Origin: Macrostomum lignano
Lineage: Eukaryota
DNA length: 64,000 nucleotides
Reading direction: 5' to 3'
Assembly (NCBI GenBank): GCA_002269645.1
Contig: NIVC01003244.1
Location: 1 to 64,000, forward strand
The number at the start of each line of letters is the position of its first letter. Position 1 is the stretch's first letter. The translations under genes were made by a program, and so were the position numbers. The notes below the pieces were generated by a model, which ran no database searches, was not told where the DNA came from, and worked only from the letters and a program-made list of their open reading frames with translations. Shown in pieces: positions 16,957 through 58,600 of the stretch.

Positions 16957-19900
16957 CTAAGACAGACAGACAGACAGAGAGACAAATACAGGCAGACAGA
17001 CAGACAGGTCAATCTCATTATTTCGCTAATCCAAAACACATGCCGCCTCCTATTAGGCGGAAGCACCTCAGACAGCGGTCGATTTTCCGAAAGAAGACCA
17101 ACAGCAGCAGCAACAGGAGCAGCAGGAGCGGCAAAACAGCCAGTCGGACAGTCAGGGTCTGTTCAACAAATTCCGAAGCGCATCCGGCAGCTCTACTTTC
17201 ACAGCAGTCGCATCCCATCCAGCTGTCGATGATTCCGCCGCATCGCTCACAAATTTCTATTACAAATCCGGAGGCGAATTAGACAGATTCTTGGACTCCC
17301 TCCCGGCACTGGACCATTGCCCGACTGTTGCTTCTCTGCCCGACTGTCTGTCCTCTTCGCCTTCGAAAGCTTCTTCCAGGCTGATTGCGGCTGTAGAGGC
17401 CAACTCTCTGGGCGATTTGATTCGCCTGCTGCACTCGCCAGCTTCATCGGCTGCTGGCGCTTGCGATCTGAATTGGGCCGATGAGGCGCGGAATGGAGAA
17501 ACGGCGCTGACTGCCGCTCTGAGGCAGGGCAATGTGGCAGCAGTTCGGCTGCTGCTGCAGCACGGCTGTGCCGTCAACGCCTGGTGTCAGCTGCCTGCCG
17601 CATCGGCTTTGTCAGCTTCTTCATCCGGTGATGCTGCTGGAAATGACCGGCAGCAGCAGCAATTCAAAGATCCCATAGTGGTTGCCAGGTGATTATCTTT
17701 CTTTCCTAGGTACATACGAGTGTACAGCGGCCCCTGACTTTATTTACCGTTATGCATGTACACTTCACTGTGGCTTGGGGGTTGGGCCTCAAGCTGGGCG
17801 TTAATTGCACGAGCAGAGCCAAGCCAAGATTTTTGTTATTATGATACCACAATAGTCGCTCCTAACCCTAAGACGCGAAAAATAGCCTTCTTAGAATTTG
17901 GTTCCAGGTCATCCCCAGTTCTTAGAAATTGCACCTCCCCTTTCTTAGAAATCTCCCTCAATTTTTAGAAATCACCCCCGGTTATTAGAAATCACCCTCA
18001 GTTCTTAGAAATCACCCTCAGTTCTTAGAAATCACCCTCAGTTCTTAGAAATCACCCTCAGTTCTTAGAAATCACCCTCAGTTCTTAGAAATCACCCTCA
18101 GTTCTTAGAAATCACCCTCAGTTCTTAGAAATCACCCTCAGTTCTTAGAAATCACCCTCAGTTCTTAGAAATCACCCTCAGTTCTTAGAAATCACCCTCA
18201 GTTCTTAGAAATCACCCTCAGTTCTTAGAAATCACCCTCAGTTCTTAGAAATCACCCTCAGTTCTTAGAAATCGCCCTTACCCATTTCTTGGAAATCACC
18301 CCAGTTCTTGGAAATTACCCCAGTTCTTAGAAATCGCTCTTACCCATTTCTTGGAAATCACCCCAGTTCTTGGAAATTACCCCCGTTCTTAGAAATCGCC
18401 CTTACCCATTTCTTGGAAATCACCCCAGTTCTTGGAAAGTACCCCAGTTCTTAGAAATCGCCCTTACCCATTTCTTGGAAATCACCCCATTTCTTGGAAA
18501 TCACCCCAGTTCTTGGAAATCACCCCAGTTCTTAGAAATCGCCCTTACCCATTTCTTGGAAATCACCCCATTTCTTGGAAATCACCCATTTCTTGGAAAT
18601 CACCCCAGTTCTTAGAAATCGCCCTTACCCATTTCTTGAAAATCACCCCAGTTCTTAGAAATTACCCCAGTTCTTAGAAATCGCCCTTACCCATTTCTTG
18701 GAAATCACCCCAGTTCTTAGAAATTACCCCAGTTCTTAGAAATCGCCCTTACCCATTTCTTGGAAATCACCCCAGTTCTTAGAAATCGCCCTTACCAATT
18801 TCTTGGAAATCACCCCAGTTCTTGGAAATCACCCCAGTTCTTGGAAATCACCCCAGTTCTTGAAAATCACCCCAGTTCTTGGAAATCACCCCAGTTCTTG
18901 GAAATCACCCCAGTTCTTGGAAATCACCCCAGTTCTTGGAAATCACCCCAGTTCTTGGAAATCACCCCAGTTCTTGGAAATCACTCCAGTTCTTGGAAAT
19001 CACCCCAGTTCTTGGAAATCACTCCAGTTCTTGGAAATCACTCCAGTTCTTGGAAATCACCCCAGTTCTTGGAAATCACCCCAGTTCTTGGAAATCACCC
19101 CAGTTCTTGGAAATCACCCCAGTTCTTGGAAATCACCCCAGTTCTTGGAAATCACCCCAGTTCTTGGAAATCACCCCAGTTCTTGGAAATCACCCCAGTT
19201 CTTGGAAATCACTCCAGTTCTTGGAAATCACCCCAGTTCTTGGAAATCACTCCAGTTCTTGGAAATCACCCCAGTTCTTGGAAATCACTCCAGTTCTTGG
19301 AAATCACCCCAGTTCTTGGAAATCACCCCAGTTCTTGGAAATCACCCCAGTTCTTGGAAATCACCCCAGTTCTTGGAAATCACCCCAGTTCTTGGAAATC
19401 ACCCCAGTTCTTGGAAATCACCCCAGTTCTTGGAAATCACCCCAGTTCTTGGAAATCACTCCAGTTCTTGGAAATCACCCCAGTTCTTGGAAATCACTCC
19501 AGTTCTTGGAAATCACCCCAGTTCTTGGAAATCACCCCAGTTCTTGGAAATCACTCCAGTTCTTGGAAATCACCCCAGTTCTTGGAAATCACTCCAGTTC
19601 TTGGAAATCACCCCAGTTCTTGGAAATCACCCCAGTTCTTGGAAATCACCCAGTTCTTGGAAATCACCCCAGTTCTTGGAAATCACCCCAGTTCTTGGAA
19701 ATCACCCCAGTTCTTGGAAATCACCCCAGTTCTTGGAAATCACCCCAGTTCTTGGAAATCACTCCAGTTCTTGGAAATCACCCCAGTTCTTGGAAATCAC
19801 TCCAGTTCTTGGAAATCACCCCAGTTCTTGGAAATCACCCCAGTTCTTGGAAATCACTCCAGTTCTTGGAAATCACCCCAGTTCTTGGAAATCACCCCAG

Positions 19901-20655
19901 TTCTTGGAAATCACCCCAGTTCTTGGAAATCACTCCAGTTCTTGGAAATCACCCCAGTTCTTGGAAATCACCCCAGTTCTTGGAAATCACCCCAGTTCTT
20001 GGAAATCACTCCAGTTCTTGGAAATCACCCCAGTTCTTGGAAATCACCCCAGTTCTTGGAAATCACCCCAGTTCTTGGAAATCACCCCAGTTCTTGGAAA
20101 TCACCCCAGTTCTTGGAAATCACCCCAGTTCTTAGAATTCGCCTCCCCATTGTCACTCGCAGAAGCTGCCCACTGGCAGGCGAGCTGCTCTGCTTGCTGC
20201 AGCGTCACTGCGACGCCGTTTCGCAGGCTCTGGCCGACTGCGCCCAATCAGCTCTCGGTAGCTCAGCTCGGCTGCTCGCCCCAGTCGGCCGTTTGCACAT
20301 TCTTCCCAGGCCTGGCCTGTCTGTTCAATTCGACATTGCCGATCGGCTGCCGTCGCTGCCTTGCGTACTGTTGCTAGGCAACGCCGTGTTCAACACCGGA
20401 GCCGAAGCTACAGCGGCGCCGTTGGTTCGACTCCGGGGCAGGTGCTCAGTGCGAGAGGTTTGGCTGAACAACGTGCGCCAGATGCCGCTGAGTCAGGCCG
20501 GCTGTTTCATTTGCACCTGCGCCCCGCTCCGTGTCGGCTCCAACACTGTCGGCTTGGTGCCCAGCGGGTCGTTTCGGCTGCCAGCCGACGGCAGATTCCG
20601 GCTATTGGTTAGAGCGTACGAAGTGAAAGTGTTGGCCGAGAGTGGGGCTGCTTAG
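16451..20655 (+). CDS. MPHOSPH8: M-phase phosphoprotein 8-like (chromodomain + ankyrin repeats + MPP8-type C-terminal domain), 3 exons, ~472 aa
   Basis: Exons 16451-16717 (chromodomain YEVEKIL...YLIKWKGF...TWEP; donor GCG|GTGAGT, phase 0), 17057-17688 (ankyrin repeats GETALTAALRQGNVAAVRLLLQHG; phase 2) and 20136-20655 join in frame. C-terminus LRGRCSVREVWLNNVRQMP...FRLLVRAYEV matches the recalled MPP8 C-terminus (LYGPCSVQAVVLNDKFQLP...KLLIGAYRV). Confidence 0.8.
16740..17010. repeat. (GACA)n/(GGCA)n microsatellite in MPP8 intron 1
   Basis: Direct reading. Confidence 0.9.
17900..20135. repeat. 20-bp (GTTCTTAGAAATCACCCTCA) to 19-bp (GTTCTTGGAAATCACCCCA) minisatellite filling MPP8 intron 2
   Basis: About 100 tandem units; last unit ends CAGTTCTTAG immediately before exon 3. 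Confidence 0.95.
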
Positions 20656-20689: not shown

Positions 20690-23115
20690 GGAGGCAGACA
20701 CACAGACACACATAGAACATGTCTATGACACACAGACACACATATAACATGTCTATGACACACAGACACACATAGAACATGTCTATGACACACAGACACA
20801 CATAGAACATGTCTATGACACACAGACACACATATAACATGTCTATGACACACAGACACACATAGAACATGGCTATGACACACAGACACACATAGAACAT
20901 GTCTATGACACACAGACACACATAGAACATGGCTATGACACACAGACACACATAGAACATGTCTATGACACACAGACACACATATAACATGTCTATGACA
21001 CACAGACACACATAGAACATGTCTATGACACACAGACACACAGAGAACATGTCTATGACACACAGACACACATATAACATGTCTATGACACACAGACACA
21101 CATAGAACATGGCTATGACACACAGACACACATAGAACATGTCTATGACACACAGACACACATAGAACATGTCTATGACACACAGACACACATAGAACAT
21201 GTCTATGACACACAGACACACATAGAACATGTCTATGACACACAGACACACATAGAACATGTCTATGGACACACAGACACACATAGAACATGTCTATGAC
21301 ACACAGACACACATAGAAAATGTCTATGACACACAGACACACATAGAACATGTCTATGACACACAGACACACATAGAACATGGCTATGACACACAGACAC
21401 ACATAGAACATGGCTATGACACACAGACACACATAGAACATGTCTATGACACACAGACACACATAGAACATGTCTATGACACACAGACACACATAGAACA
21501 TGTCTATGACACACAGACACACAGAGAACATGTCTATGACACACAGACACACATAGAACATGTCTATGACACACAGACACACATATAACATGTCTATGAC
21601 ACACAGACACACATAGAACATGGCTATGACACACAGACACACATAGAACATGTCTATGACACACAGACACACATAGAACATGTCTATGACACACAGACAC
21701 ACATAGAACATGGCTATGACACACAGACACACATAGAACATGTCTATGACACACAGACACACATAGAACATGTCTATGGACACACAGACACACATAGAAC
21801 ATGTCTATGACACACAGACACACATAGAAAATGTCTATGACACACAGACACACATAGAAAATGTCTATGACACACAGACACACATAGAACATGGCTATGA
21901 CACACAGACACACATAGAACATGGCTATGACACACAGACACACATAGAACATGTCTATGACACACAGACACACATAGAACATGTCTATGACACACAGACA
22001 CACATAGAACATGTCTTTGACACACAGACACACATAGAACATGTCTATGACACACAGACACACATAGAACATGGCTATGACACACAGACACACATGGAAC
22101 ATGTCTATGACACACAGACACACATAGAACATGTCTTTGACACACAGACACACATAGAACATGGCTATGACACACAGACACACATAGAACATGTCTATGA
22201 CACACAGACACACATAGAAAATGTCTATGACACACAGACACACATAGAACATGTCTATGACACACAGACACACATAGAACATGTCTATGACACACAGACA
22301 CACATAGAACATGTCTATGACACACAGACACACATAGAACATGTCTATGGACACACAGACACACATAGAACATGTCTATGACACACAGACACACATAGAA
22401 AATGTCTATGACACACAGACACACATAGAAAATGTCTATGACACACAGACACACATAGAACATGGCTATGACACACAGACACACATAGAACATGGCTATG
22501 ACACACAGACACACATAGAACATGTCTATGACACACAGACACACATAGAACATGTCTATGACACACAGACACACATAGAACATGTCTTTGACACACAGAC
22601 ACACATAGAACATGTCTATGACACACAGACACACATAGAACATGGCTATGACACACAGACACACATGGAACATGTCTATGACACACAGGCACACATAGAA
22701 CATGTCTTTGACACACAGACACACATAGAACATGGCTATGACACACAGACACACATAGAACATGGCTATGACACACAGACACACATAGAACATGGCTATG
22801 ACACACAGACACACATAGAACATGTCTATGACACACAGACACACATAGAACATGGCTATGACACACAGACACACATAGAACATGTCTATGACACACAGAC
22901 ACACATAGAACATGGCTATGACACACAGACACACATAGAAAATGTCTATGACACACAGACACACATAGAACATGGCTATGACACACAGACACACATATAA
23001 CATGGCTATGACACACAGACACACATAGAACATGGCTATGACACACAGACACACATAGAACATGTCTATGGACACACAGACACACATAGAACATGTCGAT
23101 GACACACAGACACAT
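20690..23115. repeat. 30-bp minisatellite GACACACAGACACACATAGAACATGTCTAT, ~80 copies
   Basis: Tandem array beginning ~35 bp after the MPP8 stop codon. Confidence 0.95.
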
Positions 23116-24509: not shown

Positions 24510-27500
24510 ATGCAGTCCGACGCCAGTCGCGAAGACTTGTTCCGAGCCCTATTCAGAGCCAAGTCTCTCCTAGTTGAATGCGACCAGCTTCATCGAGCCT
24601 ATGCTAGACAGTGCCGCCGGGTCAGTTCGCTGGAAGCCGAACTGGCCAGAGCTAGAGAATCGGCTAATCGTTGCTCAGCATTGAAAGCTGCCCTGTCATT
24701 AACCGAAGCTAACCTGCAGCGAACTCGGCACGAATTAGCGGAGGCTCGACTAGAATTGAGTCAGTTGAAGCAACCGAAACGTCGCGCGTCTAAACGAATA
24801 AGCAGCCGCGCCACCGATCCTGGGGTGTCAGCAGTTCAACCTAAGCGTCCTAGGCGTGTTGATTTGGACGCCACTTCTTCTAGCGATGAGGATAATGATG
24901 AGGATAAACCGCAACCTCAGGCGGAAGAATCCACCAGGCCTAAGAGCTCCAATCCTCACAGTGAAGCTCAAATACATGTACAAGAGCCTCTGTGCTCCTC
25001 CAATCAATCCGTTGTGATTGTTTCCGATGAAACAGCAAAGACTGCTGCTAATAGAAAGTTGTCTATAGAGCAGTGCCTGTCTTCTGTTAATCAGCGTCCA
25101 AGAAGAGCGCTTCAAATGTACGACAAAGATCGCAGCCGTAGAAATAAACATCAGCGCTACAGACAGAGTCTTTCGGCTAGTTGCGGTGCTGACTTCTCTA
25201 AATCTAAAACATCCCAGTCTCCTAAAACTGGCGTTATTCGGCGAAGGCATTCCCACCGGGTAGATCTGGATGCTACATCCAGCGAAGAGGAAGGCAATGG
25301 AAGCGGCGCTGCTAAAAGCAAAAGACGGCGTCCATTAGAGCCTCCTTTGCCGATCAAATCGTTTGCCTATAACACGAGGTCCAATGCGAAACTTTCGTCT
25401 GGCATTATTGAAATAAGTGCAGAATGTCGAGATGAAGCATCGTCTGATGTCACTATTGTCCTGCAGGATGAGGATGCTAATGGCACTGCAACAGATAAGC
25501 CTATTGTTGTGCAGAATGCAAATGGCACTGCAACAGATGAGCCCATTGTGCAGAATGCAGATGGCACTGCAACAGATGAGCCCATTGTGCAGGATGCAAA
25601 TGGCACTGCAACAGATAAGCCTATTGTTGTGCAGAATGCAGATGGCACTGCAACAGATGAGCCCATTGTGCAGAATGCAGATGGCACTGCAACAGATAAG
25701 CGCATTGTGCAGGATGCAGAAGGCACTGCAACAGATGAGTCCATTGTGCAGGATGTAGATGGCACTGCAACAGATGAGCCCATTGTGCAGGATGCAGAAG
25801 GCACTGCAACAGATGAGTCCATTGTGCAGGATGTAGATGGCACTGCAACAGATGAGCCCATTGTGCAGGATGCAGATGGCACTGCAACAGATGAGCCCAT
25901 TGTGCAGGATGCAGATGGCACTGCAACAGATCAACCCATTGTTTTGCAGAATGCAGATGGCACTGCAACAGATCAGCCCATGGTGCAGGATGCAGATGGC
26001 ACTGCAACAGATCAACCCATTGCTTTGCAGAATGCAGATGGCACTGCAACAGATCAGCCCATTGTGCAGGATGCAGATGGCACTGCAACAGATCAACCCA
26101 TTGTTTTGCAGAATGCAGATGGCACTGCAACAGATTACCCTATTGTTTTGCAGGATGCACATGGCACTGCAACAGATGAGCCTATTGTGCAGGATGCAGA
26201 TGGCACCACGACAGATGAGCCCATTGTTGAGCAGAATGAGGATTCAGATAGTGTTACATCAGACGAGGAATCATCTGTTTTACATGTTGCTGTAGAAGAT
26301 TCTAAGGAATCTGCTGTTATGGAAGAAGCTAAGGAACCATCTGATTCGTTTGTTGTCGCAGTGGAAGAAGCTAAGGAACCATCTGATTCGTTTGTTGGCC
26401 CAGTGGAAGAAGCTAAGGAACCATCTGATTCGTTTGTTGTCGCAGTGGAAGAAGCTAAGGAACCATCTGATTCGTTTGTTGTCGCAGTGGAAGAAGCTAA
26501 GAAATCATCTGATTCGTTTGTTGTCGCAGTGGAAGAAGCTAAGGAACCATCTGATTGGTTTGTTGGCCCAGTGGAAGAAGCTAAGGAACCATCTGATTCG
26601 TTTGTTGTCGCAGTGGAAGAAGCTAAGGAACCATCTGTTAATGATGCAATGGAAGACTCAAATGAATCGTTTAGTGTGACGGTTGTGGAAGATTCACTGC
26701 ACAATGAGAATAGAAAATTCATTGAACCTTCTACTAGCGAAGATTTCACATCTGAAAAAGATGTCACACTTCAAAATGCTAACAATACTACTGAGCTAAA
26801 AGTTAAACATGCGAAGAAAATTGATCCAGCAGAAGATCCTGTCGAATCGAGACTTTCCATAGCAGAAGTAGCAACAGATTCGACTCAAACGGTTGTAGAA
26901 AGACAAGAAAGTGTAGTCCGAGTCAAAACAACTGCATCAGCTTCATCGAGTGCCGCTTCTAGCGATCCTCATCATCATCGAATTGCCAATTGTTCCACAA
27001 CAAATAGCGAAGACTTCGACAATGCTTCGTGCAATCTGGCAATTGCCGATTTTAACGAAGACGACGAATTTGACAAAGCCTCGGTGGCAAGTTCAATTAA
27101 TAATCGACAGGTTTTGCCGTCGCTCTTGTCGCCGATCAGATCGCCCGACTCCGAGACAGTCGACCAGCCTGCGGCGCCCAGCGGCGAATCCGCCAGCCGA
27201 TTGAAACGGCGCTCTTTTCCTGTCGACGATTTTGTTCGCGATTTGAATACTTCGTCCGCGTTTCGAGCGGTTGCTAGCGCAATACCGGACGGTTGGCCTC
27301 TCGATCCAGTGATAGATTGGACATTCTTCTTGTCCCACAGGATCGACATGCTCGAATCTTTGCCAGCCGAACCGTTAAGCTATTTAGACCGGATTAATGC
27401 CGGGATAGCCGCTATTATTGATAATAGAGACGATAATAACAGCGCCGATTGTTGCCTTGACGACGACGAATTAGATTATCTGCTTCAGCCGGGTTCAATT

Positions 27501-27833
27501 GCCGAACTGTGCCGCGGAGGCGGCGTTCAACCGCCTTGGATTGTCAGCCGGTTGATTCCATTTCTTGAGCGGCTGTTAGATAAAACAGCTGATCGAAACA
27601 AAGACTCTAGAATTGGTTCGTTGCGCCGTCGCTGCCTGGCCTGCCTAATGATTGTCGGGCCCCTGTCGCCTCAGGCGGCCGCCCGATCCGCCGTTCGCTG
27701 GATCAACGCCGACCAGCCGGGGCCTGGCGACGTTATTGTTGGCCAAGTGAAACGGTTTCTAAAAATGAGACCGGCCCTGTTGAAAACTCTGTTCGTTACT
27801 GAGAAATTTCCAGTTTGCCTTCTGGCTGCTTGA
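24510..27833 (+). CDS. 1107-aa protein: N-terminal coiled coil, acidic tandem repeats, helical C-terminal region; possibly little elongation complex subunit ICE1-like
   Basis: Uninterrupted ATG-to-TGA ORF of non-satellite composition. N-terminal ALFRAKSLLVECDQLHRAYARQC keeps the A-L-x3-K-x6-D-x-L-x3-Y-x3-C spacing I recall for the ICE1 N-terminus. Identity tentative; the 3' end may splice further. Confidence 0.75.
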   Translation: MQSDASREDLFRALFRAKSLLVECDQLHRAYARQCRRVSSLEAELARARESANRCSALKAALSLTEANLQRTRHELAEARLELSQLKQPKRRASKRISSRATDPGVSAVQPKRPRRVDLDATSSSDEDNDEDKPQPQAEESTRPKSSNPHSEAQIHVQEPLCSSNQSVVIVSDETAKTAANRKLSIEQCLSSVNQRPRRALQMYDKDRSRRNKHQRYRQSLSASCGADFSKSKTSQSPKTGVIRRRHSHRVDLDATSSEEEGNGSGAAKSKRRRPLEPPLPIKSFAYNTRSNAKLSSGIIEISAECRDEASSDVTIVLQDEDANGTATDKPIVVQNANGTATDEPIVQNADGTATDEPIVQDANGTATDKPIVVQNADGTATDEPIVQNADGTATDKRIVQDAEGTATDESIVQDVDGTATDEPIVQDAEGTATDESIVQDVDGTATDEPIVQDADGTATDEPIVQDADGTATDQPIVLQNADGTATDQPMVQDADGTATDQPIALQNADGTATDQPIVQDADGTATDQPIVLQNADGTATDYPIVLQDAHGTATDEPIVQDADGTTTDEPIVEQNEDSDSVTSDEESSVLHVAVEDSKESAVMEEAKEPSDSFVVAVEEAKEPSDSFVGPVEEAKEPSDSFVVAVEEAKEPSDSFVVAVEEAKKSSDSFVVAVEEAKEPSDWFVGPVEEAKEPSDSFVVAVEEAKEPSVNDAMEDSNESFSVTVVEDSLHNENRKFIEPSTSEDFTSEKDVTLQNANNTTELKVKHAKKIDPAEDPVESRLSIAEVATDSTQTVVERQESVVRVKTTASASSSAASSDPHHHRIANCSTTNSEDFDNASCNLAIADFNEDDEFDKASVASSINNRQVLPSLLSPIRSPDSETVDQPAAPSGESASRLKRRSFPVDDFVRDLNTSSAFRAVASAIPDGWPLDPVIDWTFFLSHRIDMLESLPAEPLSYLDRINAGIAAIIDNRDDNNSADCCLDDDELDYLLQPGSIAELCRGGGVQPPWIVSRLIPFLERLLDKTADRNKDSRIGSLRRRCLACLMIVGPLSPQAAARSAVRWINADQPGPGDVIVGQVKRFLKMRPALLKTLFVTEKFPVCLLAA
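25473..26655 (+). repeat. Coding tandem repeats: DADGTATDEPIVQ (39/42 bp, ~25473-26230) and VEEAKEPSDSFVVA (42 bp, ~26319-26655)
   Basis: All unit lengths are multiples of 3 and in frame with the 1107-aa ORF. Confidence 0.9.
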
Positions 27834-28839: not shown

Positions 28840-31800
28840 GCCAGCCTCCCAGATCCTCAGTTGCTGGGCCAGCCTCCCAGATCCTCAGTTGCTGGGCCAG
28901 CCTCCCAGATCCTCAGTTGCTGGGCCAGCCTCCCAGATCCACAGTTGCTGGGCCAGCCTCTCAGATCCTCAGTTGCTGGGCCAGCCTCTCAGATCCTCAG
29001 TTGCTGGGCCAGCCTCCCAGATCCTCAGTTGCTGGGCCAGCCTCCCAGATCCTCAGTTGCTGGGCCAGCCTCCCAGATCCACAGTTGCTGGGCCAGCCTC
29101 CCAGATCCACAGTTGCTGGGCCAGCCTCTCAGATCCTCAGTTGCTGGGCCAGCCTCCCAGATCCACAGTTGCTGGGCCTGGGCCAGCCTCCCAGATCCTC
29201 AGTTGCTGGGCCAGCCTCCCAGATCCACAGTTGCTGGGCCTGGGCCAGCCTCCCAGATCCACAGTTGCTGGGCCAGCCTCCCAGATCCTCAGTTGCTGGG
29301 CCAGCCTCCCAGATCCTCAGTTGCTGGGCCAGCCTCCCAGATCCTCAGTTGCTGGGCCAGCCTCTCAGATCCTCAGTTGCTGGGCCAGCCTCTCAGATCC
29401 TCAGTTGCTGGGCCAGCCTCTCAGATCCTCAGTTGCTGGGCCAGCCTCTCAGATCCTCAGTTGCTGGGCCAGCCTCCCAGATCCTCAGTTGCTGGGCCAG
29501 CCTCTCAGATCCTCAGTTGCTGGGCCAGCCTCTCAGATCCTCAGTTGCTGGGCCAGCCTCCCAGATCCACAGTTGCTGGGCCAGCCTCCCAGGTCCTCAG
29601 TTGCTGGGCCAGCCTCTCAGATCCTCAGTTGCTGGGCCAGCCTCCCAGATCCTCAGTTGCTGGGCCAGCCTCCCAGATCCTCAGTTGCTGGGCCAGCCTC
29701 TCAGATCCTCAGTTGCTGGGCCAGCCTCCCAGATCCTCAGTTGCTGGGCCAGCCTCCCAGATCCTCAGTTGCTGGGCCAGCCTCCCAGTTCCTCAGTTGC
29801 TGGGCCAGCCTCCCAGATCCTCAGTTGCTGGGCCAGCCTCCCAGATCCTCAGTTGCTGGGCCAGCCTCCCACATCCTCAGTTGCTGGGCCAGCCTCCCAG
29901 ATCCTCAGTTGCTGGGCCAGCCTCCCAGAGTGTCAGTTGCTGGGCCAGCCTCCCAGATCCTCAGTTGCTGGGCCAGCCTCCCAGATCCTCAGTTGCTGGG
30001 CCAGCCTCCCAGATCCTCAGTTGCTGGGCCAGCCTCCCAGAGTGTCAGTTGCTGGGCCAGCCTCCCAGATCCTCAGTTGCTGGGCCAGCCTCCCAGATCC
30101 TCAGTTGCTGGGCCAGTCTCCCAGATCCTCAGTTGCTGGGCCAGCCTCCCAGATCCTCAGTTGCTGGGCCAGCCTCCCAGATCCTTAGTTGCTGGGCCAG
30201 CCACCCAGATCCTCAGTTGCTGGGCCAGTCTCCCAGATCCTCAGTTGCTGGGCCAGCCTCCCAGATCCTTAGTTGCTGGGCCAGCCTCCCAGATCCTCAG
30301 TTGCTGGGCCAGCCTCCCAGATCCTCAGTTGCTGGGCCAGTCTCCCAGATCCTCAGTTGCTGGGCCAGCCTCCCAGATCCTCAGTTGCTGGGCCAGCCTC
30401 CCAGATCCTCAGTTGCTGGGCCAGCCTCCCAGATCCTCAGTTGCTGGGCCAGTCTCCCAGATCCTCAGTTGCTGGGCCAGTCTCCCAGGTCTTCAGTTGC
30501 TGGGCCAGCCTCTCAGATCCTTAGTTGCTGGGCCAGTCTCCCAGATCCTCAGTTGCTGGGCCAGTCTCCCAGGTCTTCAGTTGCTGGGCCAGCCTCTCAG
30601 ATCCTTAGTTGCTGGGCCAGTCTCCCAGATCCTCAGTTGCTGGGCCAGTCTCCCAGGTCTTCAGTTGCTGGGCCAGCCTCTCAGATCCTTAGTTGCTGGG
30701 CCAGTCTCCTAGATCCTCAGTTGCTGGGCCAGCCTCCCAGGTCTTCAGTTGCTGGGCCAGCCTCTCAGATCCTTAGTTGCTGGGCCAGTCTCCCAGATCC
30801 TCAGTTGCTGGGCCAGTCTCCCAGATCCTCAGTTGCTGGGCCAGCCTCCCAGATCCTCAGTTGCTGGGCCAGTCTCCCAGATCCTCAGTTGCTGGGCCAG
30901 TCTCCCAGATCCTCAGTTGCTGGGCCAGTCTCCCAGATCCTCAGTTGCTGGGCCAGCCTCCCAGATCCTCAGTTGCTGGGCCAGTCTCCCAGATCCTCAG
31001 TTGCTGGGCCAGCCTCCCAGATCCTCAGTTGCTGGGCCAGCCTCCCAGATCCTCAGTTGCTGGGCCAGTCTCCCAGATCCTCAGTTGCTGGGCCAGCCTC
31101 CCAGATCCTCAGTTGCTGGGCCAGCCTCCCAGATCCTCAGTTGCTGGGCCAGCCTCCCAGATCCTCAGTTGCTGGGCCAGTCTCCCAGATCCTCAGTTGC
31201 TGGGCCAGCCTCCCAGATCCTCAGTTGCTGGGCCAGTCTCCCAGATCCTCAGTTGCTGGGCCAGCCTCCCAGATCCTCAGTTGCTGGGCCAGCCTCCCAG
31301 ATCCTCAGTTGCTGGGCCAGCCTCCCAGATCCTCAGTTGCTGGGCCAGCCTCCCAGATCCTCAGTTGCCAGGCCAGCCTCCCAGATCCTCAGTTGCTGGG
31401 CCAGCCTCCCAGATCCTCGGTTGCTGGGCCAGCCTCCCAGATCCTCAGTTGCTGGGCCAGTCTCCTAGATCCTCAGTTGCTGGGCCAGCCTCCCAGATCC
31501 TCAGTTGCTGGGCCAGTCTCCCAGATCCTCAGTTGCTGGGCCAGCCTCCCAGATCCTCAGTTGCTGGGCCAGCCTCCCAGATCCTCAGTTGCCGGGCCAG
31601 CCTCCCAGATCCTCAGTTGCTGGGCCAGCCTCCCAGATCCTCGGTTGCTGGGCCAGCCTCCCAGATCCTCAGTTATTGGGCCAGCCTCCCAGAGTGTCAG
31701 TTGCTGAGGCAGCCTCCCAGATCCTCAGTTGCTTTCCAGCCTCTCAGATCCTCAGTTACTGGGCCAGCCTCCCAGAGTGTCAGTTGCTGGGCCAGCCTCT

Positions 31801-32325
31801 CAGTGTCAGTTGCTGGGCCAGCCTCACAGATCGATCCTCAGTTGCTGGGCCAGCCTCACAGATCGATCCTCAGTTGCTGGGCCAGCCTCCCAGATCCTCA
31901 GTTGCTAGCTAGGCCAGCCCCCCAGATCCTCAGTTATTGGGCCAGCCTCCCAGAGTGTCAGTTGCTGAGGCAGCCTCCCAGATCCTCAGTTGCTTTCCAG
32001 CCTCTCAGATCCTCAGTTACTGGGCCAGCCTCCCAGAGTGTCAGTTGCTGGGCCAGCCTCTCAGTGTCAGTTGCTGGGCCAGCCTCACAGATCGATCCTC
32101 AGTTGCTGGGCCAGCCTCACAGATCGATCCTCAGTTGCTGGGCCGGCCTCCCAGATCCTCAGTTGCTAGCTAGGCCAGCCTCCCAGATCCTCAGTTGCTA
32201 GCTAGGCCAGCCTCCCAGATCCTCAGTTGCTAGCTAGGCCAGCCTCCCAGGTCCTCGGTTGCTGGGCCACCAGTCTCCCAGGTCCTCAGTTTGCTGAGCC
32301 AGCCTCCCAGATCTTTAGTTGCTGA
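28840..32325. repeat. 28-bp minisatellite (GCCAGCCTCCCAGATCCTCAGTTGCTGG), ~120 copies
   Basis: Tandem array; same unit as 9676-10507; degenerate 3' end. Confidence 0.95.
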
Positions 32326-32777: not shown

Positions 32778-33270
32778 TTAGTTCAATTGGTTAGTCACCA
32801 GAATTAGTTCTACAAGCCATTGCCGTTGCATTGATGCTGGAGCCGATGTAGGCTGGCCGAGAGCAGCCGCCGCATCGCTTCCGAGCAGAGGCTCAAAGCC
32901 AAAAACAGCACTGAAAGGCGAAGCCACAGTCGTTGAGTTGCGTCTGCTGTTGTAAGCAAGTTGGATTGCGTCCAGGTGCCGATCCCAGTTAATGTCAGTT
33001 GGGGAGTTGCAAACCTTGCGAAGCAGGGTGAGGCACGTTTGGTTTAGCCTCTCAGTTTGTCCATTCGTCTGAGGATGGTAAGCACTCGTTACTCGTCTTT
33101 CCGTACCGGCCCTCCTGTAGCAAAGCCTCGATGATGGAATTGCAGAATTCCCTGCCTTGATCACTCAGAAGAATGCGAGGCCAGCCAAAAAGGCCAAATA
33201 GGCTTTTCAGTTCTCGAGCGACCGTGTCCGCTCGTACATTTGGTATTGGGCGAAAAACTGCAAAGGGGGT
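32778..33270 (-). mobile_element. Ty3/Gypsy integrase (rve) relic, frameshifted
   Basis: One frame gives PFAVFRPIPNVRADTVARELKSLFGLFGWPRILLSDQGREFCNS; another gives RRVTSAYHPQTNGQTERLNQT...WDRHLDAIQLAYNSRRNSTTVASPFSAVFG. These are typical Gypsy integrase core motifs. Truncated at its 5' end by a hairpin element. Confidence 0.85.
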
Positions 33271-33486: not shown

Positions 33487-34192
33487 TGAGATCCCCATTT
33501 TATCCCCTTTATCCCCTGGGACCCCAATCTGTGTAATTCATCTAGAGCTCACTGCTAGGTACAGATATATTAGCTGTTTGCATATAAAGGCCGTGTACAG
33601 GTCATATACGAGCTAAAGGCCCTGCACATGCAACCAGTAATTATTTGGCAGAGTTTTAGCCCCGTGGCTGTACTCCGCTCATGTTCATTTCTACCCCGGA
33701 GATCTCAAAATCAGGGAAAACGCAAGGCCTTGCGTTGTCCGGGACTGGAGATCGCAAAGCAGAGTCACATTCGTCTTGCGATCTCCGGCCGGAGACTGCA
33801 AGCGCACGGAGATTGCAAAGCCTAACACCGGTACATTTCGTTTGATTTTCACTTTTTCACTTAATAGGCAATCTACTCTACTATTAGTAGAAAAGAAGTA
33901 ATATAGAAGTAATTTGATTATATAATTGTTTCTACCAGTATCGCTAGGATTGGCCAGTGGCTCTGATTCGTCACGCATGGGAATCCATCGAATTCCGGGA
34001 TTTGGAAGCGTTTGACATGCAGACAGGCGTAACATTTCAGATTTTTAAACATCCATTTTCATCGTCACTGTTCGATTCCTGCTCCTCGAATACTCCCCCC
34101 ACCGGTCTCTAGTGGCACAATAAGCGGACAGAACTACTCGTAGCTGACTGGCTGACTGGATTTTGGCTTCGTTGTTCATTAAATTTTGCTGC

Positions 34193-34199
34193 TATAAAA
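34193..34199 (+). promoter_or_regulatory. Candidate TATA box of the prohormone gene
   Basis: TATAAAA ~130 bp upstream of ATG 34324, with an Inr-like TCACTG 30-40 bp downstream. Confidence 0.35.
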
Positions 34200-34323
34200 T
34201 CTGCGTTTTTTCGCACTCGCCGAATCTCTCACTGCAGTTTATCATAAGCAAACTTGAGTCTACAAATCATAATTAGAATATTCTTTGTGGCTAACTAAAG
34301 CGCGCTTATTCTTAGCAGAGAAA

Positions 34324-35749
34324 ATGAAGCTCTGGGTAATAACTAAACTGATTGTCGCCTCGGCTACCATTGCCGCTGTGGCTGTGCTGATGGCAGCTTC
34401 GGCCGCTGCAAGCTTTGACAACCCTGAGCAGGAGGGTGAGCGATTGAATTGAAATTGGTGCATGCCTTGTCCGTTTGCTAAAATGCAATTATGTTGCAGA
34501 CTGTTTAGCATTGAGCCAACACCCCAACCCCCAGTTCATTGAGCCAACACCCCAACCTCAGTTCATTCAGCCAACACCCCACTCAGTTCATGCAACCAAC
34601 ACCCCACCCAGTTCATTGAGCCAACACGGCCCAACCCAAGTTCATTGAGCCAACACCCCAACCCGGGTTCATTGAGCCAATACCAACCCCCAGTTCATTG
34701 AGCCAACACCCCAACCCCCAGTTCATTGAGCCAATACCAACCCCCAGTTCATTGAGCCAACACCCCACCCAGTTCATTGAGCCAACACCCCAACCCCCAG
34801 TTCATTGAGCCAATACCAACCCCCAGTTCATTGAGCCAATACCAACCCCCAGTTCATTGAGCCAATACCAACCCCCAGTTCATTGAGCCAATACCAACCC
34901 CCAGTTCATTGAGCCAATACCAACCCCCAGTTCATTGAGCCAACACCCCAACCCCCAGTTCATTGAGCCAACACCCCAACCCCCAGTTCATTGAGCCAAT
35001 ACCAACCCCAGTTCATTGAGCCAATACCAACCCCCAGTTCATTGAGCCAATACCAACCCCCAGTTCATTGAGCCAATACCAACCCCCAGTTCATTGAGCC
35101 AATACCAACCCCCAGTTCATTGAGCCAACACCCCACCCAGTTCATTGAGCCAACACGGCCCAACCCCAGTTCATTGAGCCAACACGGCCCAACCCCAGTT
35201 CATTGAGCCAACACGGCCCAACCCCAGTTCATTGAGCCAACACGGCCCAATCCCAGTTCATTGAGCCAACACCCCAACCCCCAGTTCATTGAGCCAATAC
35301 CAACCCCAAGTTCATTGAGCCAACACCCCACGCCATCAACCCTGCTTTTATCAGTAGCGCCATTGACTCCTACCACCTATTATCTTGTTATCAGTTGCAC
35401 TTAACACGCTCTCCCCAAATTAACTACATGTATAAAACTTATCAATTCCTTTAGTACATATAGGTGGTGTAGAGATATTCCTTTACTTTAACTACAAGCA
35501 ACCCATTTTCGTCTCCAACTCTCCCAATCTCTCAAAAACACTCCAGACCGATCATCCACGCCTGTGATACCTGACTACTCCAACCTGCCGCTTCATCAAG
35601 AGGCTGTTTACAAGCGCGGCATCGAGCTGCCTGGAAATATTCATTGTTGCGTCAACGGCATCGCCGGATGCTGTCGACGAAAACGCAGAATCCGCCGACG
35701 CCGAAGTTTCGACGATCAGTTGGAGTTCGACGCGAACCAACTGCCGTGA
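34324..35749 (+). CDS. Secreted peptide/neuropeptide prohormone, 2 exons, 104 aa
   Basis: Exon 1 34324-34435 (MKLWVITKLIVASATIAAVAVLMAASAAA signal peptide; donor G|GTGAGC, phase 1) and exon 2 35547-35749 (acceptor ACACTCCAG) join in frame. Contains KR-GIELPGNIHCCVNGIAGCC-RRKRR; AATAAA ~95 bp after the stop. Confidence 0.8.
34510..35335. repeat. 26-29-bp minisatellite CAGTTCATTGAGCCAA(T/C)ACC(C)CAACCCC in the prohormone intron
   Basis: About 30 tandem units. Confidence 0.9.
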
Positions 35750-37749
35750 GCTTATAATTAGCTGCCGATAAATGAATGAAACAACTCAAGCGCTGACCAA
35801 AACTTTAAAATGGCCGTGAGTTTGTTTTATTTTGTTTGTTAAATAAACTGTGACATAGGAAATATATGATTGCGCCGCCAATCCGGTCAAGACCTTTTTG
35901 ATTTGGTCATCTGCAAGGATTTATTAATAAATGGATTTAAAGAGTTTTTTAGTCAATATTTTTATGAAGTTCAAATAATTGGTATTTTTTCAAATAATTC
36001 AAATAATTTGGTTTTCGCCAAAAGATTTGCAATTATCTGGAAGAAAGACGGTTAAATTTCTTTTATCTGCTTCAATGCTAAAGGAATTAAATATTCGAAA
36101 AACGAGTTCTCCCTATGCTTTTAATAGAAGGCCACACCAAATTGAATTCTTGACTGGCTGAATTCCAATTCCAAAAATGATTGCGCCACAACCTTTGTCT
36201 CTTCACTGTATAGGCCCCAATACTGGCTGCAGTGTGCAAAGAGAGAAAAAAATATCAGTGGCTGCGTGTGTACATTCTGACCCTGGCTGACTGCAAGGGG
36301 GACTGCAAAGACAATTGCTATTTCATTTAACTGTGCATTGGCTCTGCCGAAGTGCCGAAGCATACATATGTGGCTGATTTTATCTCCAATCAGTAGGCGG
36401 AGTAGCCGCGCCGTAGGTACTAGGACTAGGTTTAGGCTAGACGTAAGGTCCAATGTTCGATTCCCGGCGGACAAATAAAATTGAATTAAATCAACTATTG
36501 GTAGCCTGTGCATCGACTGATTGCAAATTTTTTTGATTAAATAGCAAATAAATTATCTTTATTAATTAGCAATTAATTATTTTTGCTACTCAAGACAAGC
36601 CGCTAAGCAAATTTGATTTGTAAAAAAACTGCTTCGAGTATTACTGATCCCATCAATGTGTACTGCCTAGCTCCATGAAAGTTTGAAATTGCTAAACTGC
36701 AGACGATGCTCCGAGACTGCTGAAGGTATTGCTAAATGCTGGGTTGTGCAAAAGACTGCCGATATGTATCGAAAATTGATTAGTGAGCCGTACAATGCCG
36801 AGCAAATTTCTGGATTATTGAAAGGATCATTGCAGTTTGCTGAGGATACTGAGGAGCTTGCTGAGAGGAGAACTGCAGACTGCTGAGAGGATGAATGAGA
36901 ATTGTTAAGGGAACAGTTGTAGACTGCAAATGGAATGACTGCAGACTGCTGAGGGGAACTGCAGATTGTCGAAGGGGTCATTCATGCAGACCTTCCAGAC
37001 TTATGAGCGCTGCTGAAGGGATAACTATCTACAGAGTTATTAGTGGATAATAACTGTGAAGGATTAAATGCAAGTTGTTGAGGGGATTACTGCGGACTGC
37101 TAAGTGAATTATTGTAGTCTGCTGAGAGGACAATTCTAGGCCGCTGAGGGTATAAATGCTTAATGTTAATGAAAGTTTTAGACTGCAAAGTAGATAAAAT
37201 ACAGACTGCCAAGAGATTACTGCAGTCTGTTTTGCGGGATTAGATGAAGGGATAATTTCAGGTTGTTGTGGAGATTTCTGGGGGTTCACTTCAAACTGCT
37301 GAAGTTACTAAACTTCTTGAATAGTGAGGTTTATTTCGACCATATCTGTCATTAAAAACGATAGCCGCGTTGTAGGCAGGCAGTAACAGGCATAGACTGA
37401 AGGTCGGCAGTTCGAGCCTGCATTGAAGCAACGGATTTATTTCTGAGACCTGTGACAGTATTTACGGTCTCCTATGCAGATTCATGCAGATTTTTAACAT
37501 TTAAAGTTAAATATACTTTTGCTGGGGCTGCGTTAATCTTCTAGAGCAGTGCTAATCTGATGTAAGTGCTAATTTGCAGGAGGTATCACTAATCTGGGTG
37601 AGCAGCGCTAATCGGGGAGAGCAGTGCTAATCTGACGTACAATGAAGTAATAAATATGCAAGAGGATTGCAAATCAATTTCAAGTGGTTTCGATTATTGA
37701 GAAACATGTAGATTAGCGGCCATCTACTCACTGATTGAGCGAAACAGTG

Positions 37750-45681: not shown

Positions 45682-50188
<4,507 letters not shown>

Positions 50189-52703: not shown

Positions 52704-54191
52704 CTAAACTGGCAATAAATCTTCCAGACAGGACATCACAGCGGTGGCGTGACTCGCCAGCATCGAGGCCCACAGTGTCACCTCGCCATTCACCGTGAAA
52801 TCGTCGCCTTGTGACTGGTCGCCTTCACGGTCTTTAGACGAGCACAAACCAGCAAGCCAAGCGTCACTCGATGGTCGACAGCCTTCATGGCTACTACTAG
52901 CAGTAGCATCAGCAGCATTCGCTGATTGTTTAACAATTAGTTTAGAAGCCAGCTCGGGAACTGTGCCAGCTGAGTTGGGCAGCAAATTCAGCTCTTCAAT
53001 AACCATCCAGATGTCCCACTTAGCAACTAAAGAAGCCGTGACTAAATCCGATCGGACAGAATCGCCAAAGTAGGCAATCTTTCTGGATTGAGTTTTATCA
53101 TCACATTGTCCAAGAAATTTCAATTCAAATTCTTCCGCACAACCGCTGATGTAAGCTTTACCCGACCGAATGGAAGGCGTTCGAAGCTTTCGTAGCTGCT
53201 GTAGTAACTAGCCGAGCTTGAATAATACGATTTGGACTTTTTCATAAAAAAGTTCGGCTTCCCAGCCTCCAACAGGCAGGCGTCGAATAAATCCGGCCAG
53301 TCCTGACCCAGAATGTGCTCAAGATGTCTGGCAGCGAACTGAGCCTCAGAGGATGATAATAAAAAGACATAAATGCCGCGTTGGCGAAGCTGTTTGAGCA
53401 GCACTCGAACTCCGGAGGTCACCGGGCACAGGTAAGCGCTGGGATTAGCTAATACATATTTAAAATAAGCGCCATCATCTGAGTAGACGTGAAGCAAAGC
53501 TGAGTAGCAATCCTGCCAAAGGCTGCTGCAGTCAGTCAGTGGGGTGGTTCGATTCTCTTCTGCCAAGTCCACCTGTTGATGAAGCCAACTTGCTTTTAGT
53601 AGAATATCAGCACGTATATGTAGCATCATACTGTACTGCACTGTACTGTACTGTACTGCAACCCACCTGGCCATTTTCATTTTTTTGTGCTCACAAAGCC
53701 CCAAATGAATGTGGCTGCGCAACCAGAGGTGGTCCTGGAGCCCCCCTCCTTCCCCAACGCACCAATTTAGCGAATATCAAACTGCCAGGCAAGTCGTAGT
53801 GAGTATCCTGAAATCGATAGCGACCATCTCGTTCGTGTCGATAGCCGCTATTGAGAACGGCTTGAGCAAACGGCGGCCGACCGTCTGGCGGATAAGCCAA
53901 TTTAGCGTCAAACTGTTTGCTGCCGTGACAAACTCTCAATGCTGCACCTGTGGGCGACATCAAAAGCAGATTGCCGCCTATTTTGTCTAAAATAGCGGCC
54001 CTACTCATTAAGCCGCACTCAACTGGCGATGACCAGTCAAGACTGCGCAGATGATTGGGATAGCCGCGATGCTTAACTAAATAGTCTGCCAATTCAACGT
54101 AAGCTAGACTGACCAGATTGCGCAACTGATAACGGCCCAGCGTGAGATCGATGTCAAAACCGACTGCGTCGTAGTCAAACAGACGCTCCAT
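52704..54191 (-). CDS. NT5DC1: 5'-nucleotidase domain-containing protein 1-like (HAD superfamily), one intron plus an unresolved frameshift
   Basis: N-terminal YDAVGFDIDLTL (HAD motif I), GT-AG intron 53762-53573 (phase 0), FLLSSS, KPNFF, and YFGDSVRSD...WDIWMVIEEL (motif IV). Reading frame changes between ~53200 and ~53150. Confidence 0.8.
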
Positions 54192-55697: not shown

Positions 55698-58600
55698 ATG
55701 GCAAAATCACCTGGCCTGCTATCAATTACAATCGCGCTGCTTGTGGTCAGCAGCGAACTAAAGATCACAGCACAGGGCTGGCAGTGGACTAGAGCCAATA
55801 TTAGCGTGAGTATTCAGCAATCAGCTTTGCCACACGGCAAACAAGGCCAAGATAGGATTGTTCGACTAGCCGGATTTTATGCTCCAAAGACGTCGAATGA
55901 AGCGTTCAACAGCAGTGGAAATCTGGTCAAGGTGAGCCAAAAACGAGCTACAGGGTAAAAATGAAGATCGTGAGCTCTTTTTAAAAATAGATCGAAATAT
56001 TTCTTATTCTGACAAATCGTTTCTTAAAAAGCTTAAGACTTCTGATCAAAAGTCGCATTAAATTAAAATGCCCCTGCCGAACAGTTATAAGGAACTAACT
56101 TGACAATTGTCAGTTAGTCTGTAAGATACCTGACCAAGAGTTGACAATTGTCAGTTAGTCTGTAAGATACCTGACCAAGAGTTGACAATTGTCAGTTAGT
56201 CTGTAAGATATCTGACCAACAGTTGAAAATTGTCAGTTAGTCTGTAAGATACCTGACCAAGAGTTGACAATTGTCAGTTAGTCTGTAAGATATCTGACCA
56301 ACAGTTGAAAATTGTCAGTTAGTCTGTAAGATATCTGACCAACAGTTGAAAATTGTCAGTTAGTCTGTAAGATATCTGACCAACAGTTGAAAATTGTCAG
56401 TTAGTCTGTAAGATACCTGACCAAGAGTTGACAATTGTCAGTTAGTCGGTAAGATATCTGACCAACAGTTGACAATTGTCAGTTAGTCGGTAAGATATCT
56501 GACCAACAGTTGACAATTGTCAGTTAGTCTGTAAGATACCTGACCAAGAGTTGACAATTGTCAGTTAGTCGGTAAGATATCTGACAAACAGTTGAAAATT
56601 GTCAGTTAGTCTGTAAGATATCTGACCAACAGTTGACAATTGTCAGTTAGTCGGTAAGATATCTGACAAACAGTTGAAAATTGTCAGTTAGTCTGTAAGA
56701 TACCTGTCCAAGAGTTGACAATTGTCAGTTAGTCTGTAAGATACCTGACCAAGAGTTAACAATTGTCAGTTCGTCTGTAAGATACCTGACCAAGAGTTGA
56801 CAATTGTCAGTTAGTCTGTAAGATATCTGACCAACAGTTGACAATTGTCAGTTAGTCGGTAAGATATCTGACCAACAGTTGACAATTGTCAGTTAGTCGG
56901 TAAGATACCTGTCCAAGAGTTGACAATTGTCAGTTAGTCTGTAAGATACCTGACCAAGAGTTAACAATTGTCAGTTCGTCTGTAAGATACCTGACCAAGA
57001 GTTGACAATTGTCAGTTAGTCTGTAAGATACCTGACCAACAGTTGACGATTGTCAGTTAGTCTGTAAGATATCTGACCAACAGTTGACAATTGTCAGTTA
57101 GTCGGTAAGATATCTGACAAACAGTTGAAAATTGTCAGTTAGTCTGTAAGATACCTGACCAAGAGTTAACAATTGTCAGTTCGTCTGTAAGATATCTGAC
57201 CAACAGTTGACAATTGTCAGTTAGTCGGTAAGATACCTGACCAAGAGTTAACAATTGTCAGTTCGTCTGTAAGATATCTGACCAACAGTTGACAATTGTC
57301 AGTTAGTCGGTAAGATATCTGACAAACAGTTGAAAATTGTCAGTTAGTCTGTAAGATACCTGACCAAGAGTTGACGATTGTCAGTTAGTCTGTAAGATAT
57401 CTGACCAAGAGTTGACAATTGTCAGTTAGTCGGTAAGATATCTGACAAACAGTTGAAAATTGTCAGTTAGTCTGTAAGATACCTGACCAAGAGTTGACAA
57501 TTGTCAGTTAGTCGGTAAGATATCTGACAAACAGTTGAAACTTGTCAGTTAGTCTGTAAGATACCTGACCAAGAGTTAACAATTGTCAGTTCGTCTGTAA
57601 GATATCTGACCAACAGTTGACAATTGTCAGTTAGTCTGTAAGATATCTGACCAACAGTTGACAATTGTCAGTTAGTCTGTAAGATATCTGACCAACAGTT
57701 GACAATTGTCAGTTAGTCTGTAAGATATCTTACCAACAGTTTACAATTGTCAGTTAGTCTGTAAGATATCTGACAAACAGTTGAAAATTGTCAGTTAGTC
57801 TGTAAGATACCTGACCAAGAGTTGACAATTGTCAGTTAGTCTGTAAGATACCTGACCAAGAGTTAACAATTGTCAGTTCGTCTGTAAGATATCTGACCAA
57901 CAGTTGACAATCATCAGTTAAATTGTATTTGTAAGATAATAATTTATCGGGCACTGAGCTGACATGCTCACTTGTTAAAGTTGTTAGTATGTATCGAAAT
58001 CAATAAAACACTGCAGAGGAGTGGCAGAAAGTCAGTTAATAATGCCTTGTGCTAACGATAGTAGGGAATAGAGCAATATATAATGAATTGAACAGAACAA
58101 TGGGTTTTGGAAAAGGAAAAATCAGATAGAATTTAATGGCATTGACGAAAATTCCCCTAAAAATTCTAAAAAGCCCCTATTAACTATCCTATAAGTCACT
58201 AATCAGTCACATTTATACCAAACCAAACCTGAAGTCTAACTGGGAAGAGATTTAAGGTAAAAAAATCAATACAACAAAGGAGAATATTTCCAACCGGATC
58301 GACACCTGATACCTGAAAAGCAGCTTCCTATGAGGCAATGATTCTTTTAATAAGTGCTAGATTGATTGGATATGCAGTAAAGCATGCTATGCAGGATGCA
58401 CAAGCTAGGAGTATAGAAAATCCAAGTACAATAAGTATCTTAAGCGTTGTTATCCACACAAATCGCTAAGATCGTTTCTGTTTACCAAAACTAGCATTGT
58501 GAAATATTCCATCTGTTTTTTTTCAGCTATTTCGGTATCAATAAATAAACCTTGGAACAAACTTTCAATAAATCATCTTAAGGCTACTAGAACGGCGACT

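Follow-up and report, generated by a model that had tools for sequence, protein, structure and literature searches.

A two-exon gene with a minisatellite in its intron

A two-exon gene lies on the forward strand of Macrostomum lignano contig NIVC01003244.1, within the 64-kb stretch of DNA analysed here as a whole and referred to as the window (Table 1). Its spliced coding sequence of 315 nt stays in frame and encodes, by script translation, the complete 104-aa protein MKLWVITKLIVASATIAAVAVLMAASAAASFDNPEQEDRSSTPVIPDYSNLPLHQEAVYKRGIELPGNIHCCVNGIAGCCRRKRRIRRRRSFDDQLEFDANQLP, which can be divided into the segments MKLWVITKLIVASATIAAVAVLMAASAAAS / FDNPEQEDRSSTPVIPDYSNLPLHQEAVY / KR / GIELPGNIHCCVNGIAGCC / RRKRRIRRRR / SFDDQLEFDANQLP. 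Exon 1 codes for the initiator Met, a predicted signal peptide and the beginning of an acidic spacer, and the sequence immediately before exon 2 reads ...AAAAACACTCCAG. The exons, the splice junction, the phase and the 104-aa product had been proposed in an earlier, sequence-only reading of this DNA and were borne out at each coordinate, both by direct reading and by script translation. The intron, described there as satellite-filled, does contain a 26-nt minisatellite, and the bases assigned to the peptide translate to GIELPGNIHCCVNGIAGCC. That reading had also pointed out that only part of exon 2 appears among the open reading frames, in agreement with the mechanical ORF list, which holds the exon 2 portion alone (35564-35749). 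When the whole window is translated in six frames, the CC-X6-CC pattern of the peptide appears a single time.

Table 1. Coordinates of the features of the peptide gene and its 5' and 3' flanks, numbered from the first nucleotide of the window
Feature	Position	Strand	Remarks
TATAAA, candidate core promoter	34193-34198	+	131 nt 5' of ATG
Pyrimidine tract and CAG acceptor-like site (TTATTCTTAGCAG/AGAAAATG)	34306-34318	+	5 nt before ATG
Exon 1, coding part	34324-34435, 112 nt	+	ATG at 34324, donor AGG/GTGAGC; equals GenBank CDS coordinates
Intron, phase 1	34436-35546, 1111 nt	+	GTGAGC...CCAG; Asp codon split G/AC
26-nt minisatellite CATTGAGCCAACACCAACCCCCAGTT, ~30.6 copies	34509-35327	+	within intron
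Exon 2	35547-35749, 203 nt	+	acceptor ...ACTCCAG/AC; TGA ends at 35749
Acidic spacer (propeptide) in exon 2, DRSSTPVIPDYSNLPLHQEAVY	35547-35611	+
KR dibasic site, residues 60-61	35612-35617	+	predicted N-terminal cleavage site of peptide
Predicted mature peptide GIELPGNIHCCVNGIAGCC, 19 aa, CC-X6-CC	35618-35674	+	translation
Polybasic RRKRRIRRRR, predicted C-terminal cleavage region	35675-35704	+	overlapping furin/PC-type R-X-K/R-R sites
Acidic C-terminal tail SFDDQLEFDANQLP and TGA stop	35705-35749	+
AATAAA poly(A) signal	35842-35847	+	92 nt past stop; kept in the L001 copy

The exact protein was found by sequence look-up in GenBank (PAA52423.1/PAA93639.1), where it is listed as a 'hypothetical protein' of Mlig010892g1/Mlig031427g1, and the public CDS on the same contig has the coordinates of the gene model, 34324-35749. 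The window corresponds to bases 1-64000 of this contig, with identical sequence. The gene had been called hidden in the sequence-only reading; it is uncharacterised rather than hidden, since the spliced 104-aa protein has been public, and annotated from transcript evidence, since 2017. The Mlig_3_7 GenBank annotation was built solely from genome-guided transcript assemblies, using StringTie/TACO on RNA-seq data and a de novo transcriptome, an RPKM filter and TransDecoder ORFs (PMC5730564). Because this annotation was made from transcripts only, the 34435/35547 junction reflects an assembled spliced transcript, and its RNA support is indirect, via the published annotation method. The Logan assemblies have no exact-match transcript contigs on record for the gene. 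Mlig010892, Mlig031427 and Mlig027086, a paralogue described below, were not found in the searchable parts of the M. lignano supplementary gene and expression lists, a partial coverage in which absence says little.

The M. lignano genome is recently polyploid; three genomic copies of the gene exist, each with an intact ORF. The L003 copy is 99.7% identical to the copy in the window, and the L001 copy is a diverged homeologue encoding a product of 106 aa. Between the window copy and L001, only 2 of the 203 positions of exon 2 differ, compared with 60 of the 1027 aligned columns of non-coding DNA taken from upstream, intronic (non-satellite) and downstream sequence (Fisher p = 0.002). The predicted mature peptide is unchanged across the three copies, the C-terminal tail of the homeologue carries a single Q>K change, and the intronic minisatellite array is also found in L001, at a different length. 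The occurrence of the same CDS in GenBank, the three intact genomic copies and a diverged paralogue that conserves the core place the gene model beyond chance. The locus is a real, expressed two-exon gene of M. lignano (Mlig010892/Mlig031427).

The 5' end of the transcript can be drawn in more than one way. The TATAAA box also occurs in the homeologue L001, an observation that carries little weight at the ~94% overall identity of this copy, and no TATA box is present within 260 nt upstream of the start of the paralogue Mlig027086. The paralogue has an acceptor-like site as well, TTTCAG/AGATG, 2 nt before its ATG (L004 9987-9998). The SL trans-splice acceptor motif of M. lignano is [T/C]TNCAG (PMC8629364), which is matched by the TTTCAG of the paralogue and only partly by the TAGCAG of the gene in the window. 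The position of CAG acceptors 2-5 nt before the ATG in both family members points to an mRNA that is SL trans-spliced or that carries a non-coding 5' exon. The alternative is a transcript whose true 5' end is marked by the TATA box. At the 3' end, the paralogue has an AATAAA signal 68 nt past its stop.

A 202-aa UniProt model of the same region, A0A1I8HXG2, automatically named 'Transmembrane protein', adds an upstream exon (33653-33832, +) that is spliced to the acceptor-like site near 34318. It bypasses the stop by using an overlapping GT (CC/GTGAGC at 35745/35746) and in this way reaches an exon 10 kb away (45692-45802, +). The model was rejected as the structure of the gene: a start Met is missing, and the transcript-based annotation contains no such model. 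An ab initio artefact is the probable explanation, although the model may reflect a longer transcriptional unit.

A paralogue that shares the cysteine core

Exhaustive searching of 1.84 billion representatives with phmmer returned one further relative, the 115-aa M. lignano protein Mlig027086 (E = 3e-8; PAA60840.1/PAA61624.1/PAA56099.1), which is also encoded in three genomic copies, and no relatives outside M. lignano. A profile search with the exon 2 alignment against 5.8 billion proteins likewise retrieved M. lignano proteins only. Neither paralogue matched a Pfam family, even at E<=10, and the sequence profile search of the PDB gave no match other than a chance one at E=1.2. A metagenome contig scan produced 406 pattern matches, of which 0 were confirmed. 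The gene IDs and peptide motif strings do not occur in 8.3 million full texts, and Ml-npp-type names led to nothing relevant in the searchable literature. Pfam, PDB sequences and the literature are therefore in line with the earlier statement that the peptide cannot be assigned to any named neuropeptide family. The family has two members, the gene in the window and Mlig027086, each with three genomic copies, and is detectable in M. lignano only.

Mlig027086 consists of the segments MRLTGLLALLSVLGTALSAA / QQLDEQQLRQQKPMPDAELLTDLIE / KR / GVELAGDMYCCVNGIPGCC / RRRRRR / SAPGADEAQEKLRAACSCC / RRR / SALSSPSPCCLACRQLAHQLG and is built on the same plan: its exon 1 codes for the predicted signal peptide, its intron is in phase 1 and the donor site is GTGAGC. 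The Asp codon is split G/AT instead of G/AC, and the minisatellites differ. Common to both paralogues are the KR site, a 19-aa G-[IV]-EL-x-G-x-x-x-CCVNGI-x-GCC core and a polyArg stretch, and the consensus of this sole conserved part of the family is KR-G[IV]EL[PA]G[ND][IM][HY]CCVNGI[AP]GCC-polyArg. Within the core, 13 of the 19 residues are identical, and the four Cys and the VNGI sequence are invariant. The KR site is invariant too, and RRRRRR in Mlig027086 takes the place of RRKRRIRRRR. Spacer and tail are barely alignable between the paralogues, the tail at its extreme end alone (QL..A.QL[PG]).

Comparison of the 26 core codons between the paralogues gave pS=0.65 and pN=0.16, corresponding to a dN/dS of ~0.12 with synonymous sites near saturation, as measured between copies within the genome of a single species. 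The core is under strong purifying selection, and such a dN/dS at nearly saturated synonymous sites rules out a non-coding or chance ORF. Conservation that is limited to the peptide and the basic residues around it is what one expects of a precursor from which a peptide is released by proteolysis. In the sequence-only reading, a Cys-rich core that is not conserved in relatives had been named as a ground for rejection. The core is kept in the paralogue, but no orthologue from another species was found, an absence to be read cautiously, as it refers to protein-level collections in which other Macrostomum species are represented by few predicted proteins.

Only Mlig027086 (L004 10001-10901) has a 43-aa tail, in which a further RRR site, six additional cysteines (CSCC...CCLAC) and a C-terminal Gly are found. 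The tail cysteines are distributed over two segments, …AACSCC / RRR / …SPCCLAC…, and the Gly stands at the end. On these sequence features, the tail could give rise to several Cys-containing chains or to an amidated C-terminal peptide.

A predicted precursor of a disulfide-bonded peptide

The N-terminus of the 104-aa protein comprises the n-region MKLWVITK, an uncharged stretch of 23 residues and AxA-type sites around residues 27-30. It satisfies signal-peptide heuristics (basic n-region, hydrophobic core, small residues at -3/-1), and the 23-residue stretch is also long enough for a signal anchor. The N-terminus of the paralogue, MRLTGLLALLSVLGTALSAA, has the sequence features of a short canonical signal peptide. 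AlphaFold predicts a helix from residue 2 to 29, followed by a remainder with pLDDT <50 (mean 52), and no globular domain. The acidic spacer as a whole has a net charge of -5, and the peptide is bordered on both sides by convertase-type sites, KR60-61 upstream and RRKRRIRRRR downstream, both of which are kept in the paralogue. The order of predicted signal peptide, spacer, KR, Cys core, polybasic run and tail that had been read from the DNA can thus be recognised in the protein, with the basic sites and the core conserved in the paralogue. As an architecture, the prohormone-type reading is well supported.

In the proposed processing route, the signal peptide encoded by exon 1 would bring the protein into the ER and would then be removed, and the four cysteines would oxidise in this compartment. 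A subtilisin-like proprotein convertase, of the PC2 or furin type, would cut after KR61 and inside RRKRRIRRRR, and a carboxypeptidase would trim the remaining basic residues. The predicted product is a non-amidated GIELPGNIHCCVNGIAGCC with a monoisotopic mass of 1867.78 Da when two disulfides are formed (1871.82 Da when reduced); the acidic propeptide and the 14-aa tail would also be set free. For the peptide of the paralogue, the predicted masses are 1898.71 Da (oxidised) and 1902.74 Da (reduced). R-X-K/R-R sequences are optimal furin/PC sites. A C-terminal Gly for amidation is present in many, not all, neuropeptides, and the peptide described here is without one. A PC2 homologue is present in M. 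lignano and is pan-neuronal (PMC12435804).

The 104-aa protein is therefore probably the precursor of a small, secreted peptide with disulfide bonds, most likely engaged in extracellular signalling as a neuropeptide or peptide hormone. This reading starts from the gene model, its annotation, the family and the selection on the core, from which we infer secretion, cleavage, disulfide formation and a signalling role. It has a counterpart in the planarian Schmidtea mediterranea, whose catalogue includes 19 orphan 'secreted peptide prohormones', spp-1 to spp-19 (Collins et al. 2010, PMC2953531). The layout of the gene, known from its sequence, resembles that of the flatworm spp/npp genes in the short precursor, the predicted signal peptide, the spacer and the placement of peptides between basic sites. 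Like the gene described here, these are lineage-specific in many cases and form small families by recent duplication (Planarins), and the host animal has a PC2-dependent processing system. No sequence similarity to the Schmidtea spp/npp is detectable, and the peptide described here differs in being non-amidated and in having two vicinal Cys pairs and a 10-residue polybasic C-terminal site. By analogy, the gene would fit functionally into the class of flatworm orphan prohormones.

A neuro-endocrine signal is the preferred reading over an exocrine, defensive or reproductive peptide. An exocrine gland peptide (defensive or toxin-like, from epidermal or pharyngeal glands, or of the seminal fluid) could be made by the same signal-peptide and convertase route and is considered rather unlikely, although the species- or genus-restricted distribution and the fast-diverging spacer and tail would be usual for secreted proteins of reproduction or defence, and the other known examples of the CC-CC cysteine framework are venom peptides. 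In planarians, expression of prohormone-like genes extends from the CNS to glands, gut, testes and copulatory organs (PMC2953531), which leaves room for either a neuro-endocrine or an exocrine or reproductive peptide. The selection on the core, which is strongly purifying and not diversifying, argues against an exocrine peptide. So does the position of the peptide in the middle of the precursor, followed by a C-terminal flanking peptide, which is nearer to a prohormone than to a conotoxin-type precursor. In addition, the gene IDs are not among the reproduction-related or positional gene lists, as far as these were searchable (partial search).

The toxin-like variant had been suggested by a comparison with cysteine framework V of the T-superfamily conotoxins. 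The cysteine pattern itself stands, with CC-X6-CC at residues 71-80, but no homology was found and the architecture differs. As in T-superfamily precursors, there are two vicinal Cys pairs with a short loop between them, and the Cys-rich peptide is preceded by a predicted signal peptide, a pro-region and a dibasic site. Conotoxin superfamilies are defined by their conserved signal sequence or precursor, and a homologous superfamily signal sequence was not found by phmmer, profile search or Pfam. While the mature T-superfamily toxin forms the C-terminus of its precursor, the peptide described here is followed by a polybasic run of 10 residues and a 14-aa tail (43 aa in the paralogue). The core is under purifying, not diversifying, selection, and M. 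lignano is a flatworm without a venom apparatus. As there is no homologous signal sequence, the peptide is non-terminal and selection is purifying, the gene should not be filed as conotoxin-like. The CC-CC likeness to the T-superfamily is one of cysteine spacing only, not of homology.

The polybasic run speaks to some extent against the prohormone reading: its 9-10 basic residues exceed the needs of cleavage, it is kept in the paralogue, and it might be functional. If the polyArg stayed in the product, a cationic GIELPGNIHCCVNGIAGCC-RRKRRIRRRR with a charge of ~+8 would act on membranes or nucleic acids, as an antimicrobial or cell-penetrating peptide. Such a product would account for the presence, in both paralogues, of at least six consecutive basic residues right after GCC, above what a convertase needs. 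It is nevertheless highly improbable, as the R-X-K/R-R motifs are optimal for furin/PC, CGN-rich codon runs expand readily by slippage, the further RRR between the Cys-containing segments of the paralogue resembles a multi-peptide precursor, and the structural model has neither an amphipathic helix nor a confident fold. An uncleaved signal anchor, and thus a small type II membrane protein, or a fortuitous frame in a non-coding or mis-assembled transcript can hardly be defended: the 23 uncharged residues and the 'Transmembrane protein' A0A1I8HXG2, which joins different exons, are set against the short canonical signal peptide of the paralogue, the selection on the core, the three intact copies and the defects of the 202-aa model itself (no start Met, a bypassed stop, no counterpart in the transcript-based annotation).

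For the secreted signalling peptide, a more far-reaching proposal can be formulated, which is speculative and, on balance, quite unlikely to hold in full. The CC-X6-CC peptides of Mlig010892 and Mlig027086 would form an unrecognised Macrostomum-specific (or macrostomorphan) family of disulfide-bridged signals, and Mlig027086, with its 10 Cys and three segments delimited by basic sites, would yield a hormone of several disulfide-linked chains, similar to insulin/relaxin but of independent origin.

The gene model was public before, orphan prohormone-like genes are common, and no general concept is changed. What is new is the recognition of two 'hypothetical proteins' as a small, constrained, lineage-restricted CC-X6-CC peptide family, which fits the picture of largely lineage-specific flatworm peptide repertoires. 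The peptide-signalling repertoire of M. lignano has so far been poorly catalogued. To our knowledge, M. lignano is the only flatworm in which transgenesis is routine; exact masses can be given for the predicted cleavage products, and the family is a ready target for in situ hybridisation and RNAi.

Minisatellites and neighbouring genes in the window

Tandem minisatellites make up ~45% of the window (28.9 kb), in ~40 arrays with units of 14-42 nt. Examples are the arrays at 28840-32324, 17913-20137, 20697-23114, 47797-49753 and 56100-57920. One 28-nt unit, AGCCTCCCAGATCCTCAGTTGCTGGGCC, is found in two arrays 18 kb apart (9678-10508 and 28840-32324), and many of the minisatellites yield long spurious ORFs in all frames.

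An intronless ORF of 1107 aa at 24510-27833 (+), for which the annotated gene product has 1052 aa, contains no Pfam domain and is built in part of in-frame tandem repeats of 13 aa (ADGTATDEPIVQD-like) and 14 aa (VEEAKEPSDSFVVA). Its homeologous copies have 1097 and 799 aa, indicating that the repeat number varies among copies. Approximately 1.2 kb upstream of the peptide gene, an ORF at 32778-33164 (-) has a weak match to an integrase core (rve_3, E=0.0017) and is probably a retrotransposon remnant.

Downstream of the peptide gene, an annotated gene for an Arf/Ras-family small GTPase of 217 aa starts at a distance of ~10 kb on the opposite strand (~45682 onward, -; L002 21359-21426). The same neighbour adjoins the L003 copy, and synteny is thus kept between the copies. 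Three consecutive ORFs at 52704-54191 (-) correspond to successive parts of the cytosolic 5'-nucleotidase family PF05761 and are predicted to be exons of an NT5C2/NT5DC-like gene. Close to the end of the window, an ORF at 63075-63629 (+) encodes a RING-H2 zinc finger (PF13639, E=5e-12).
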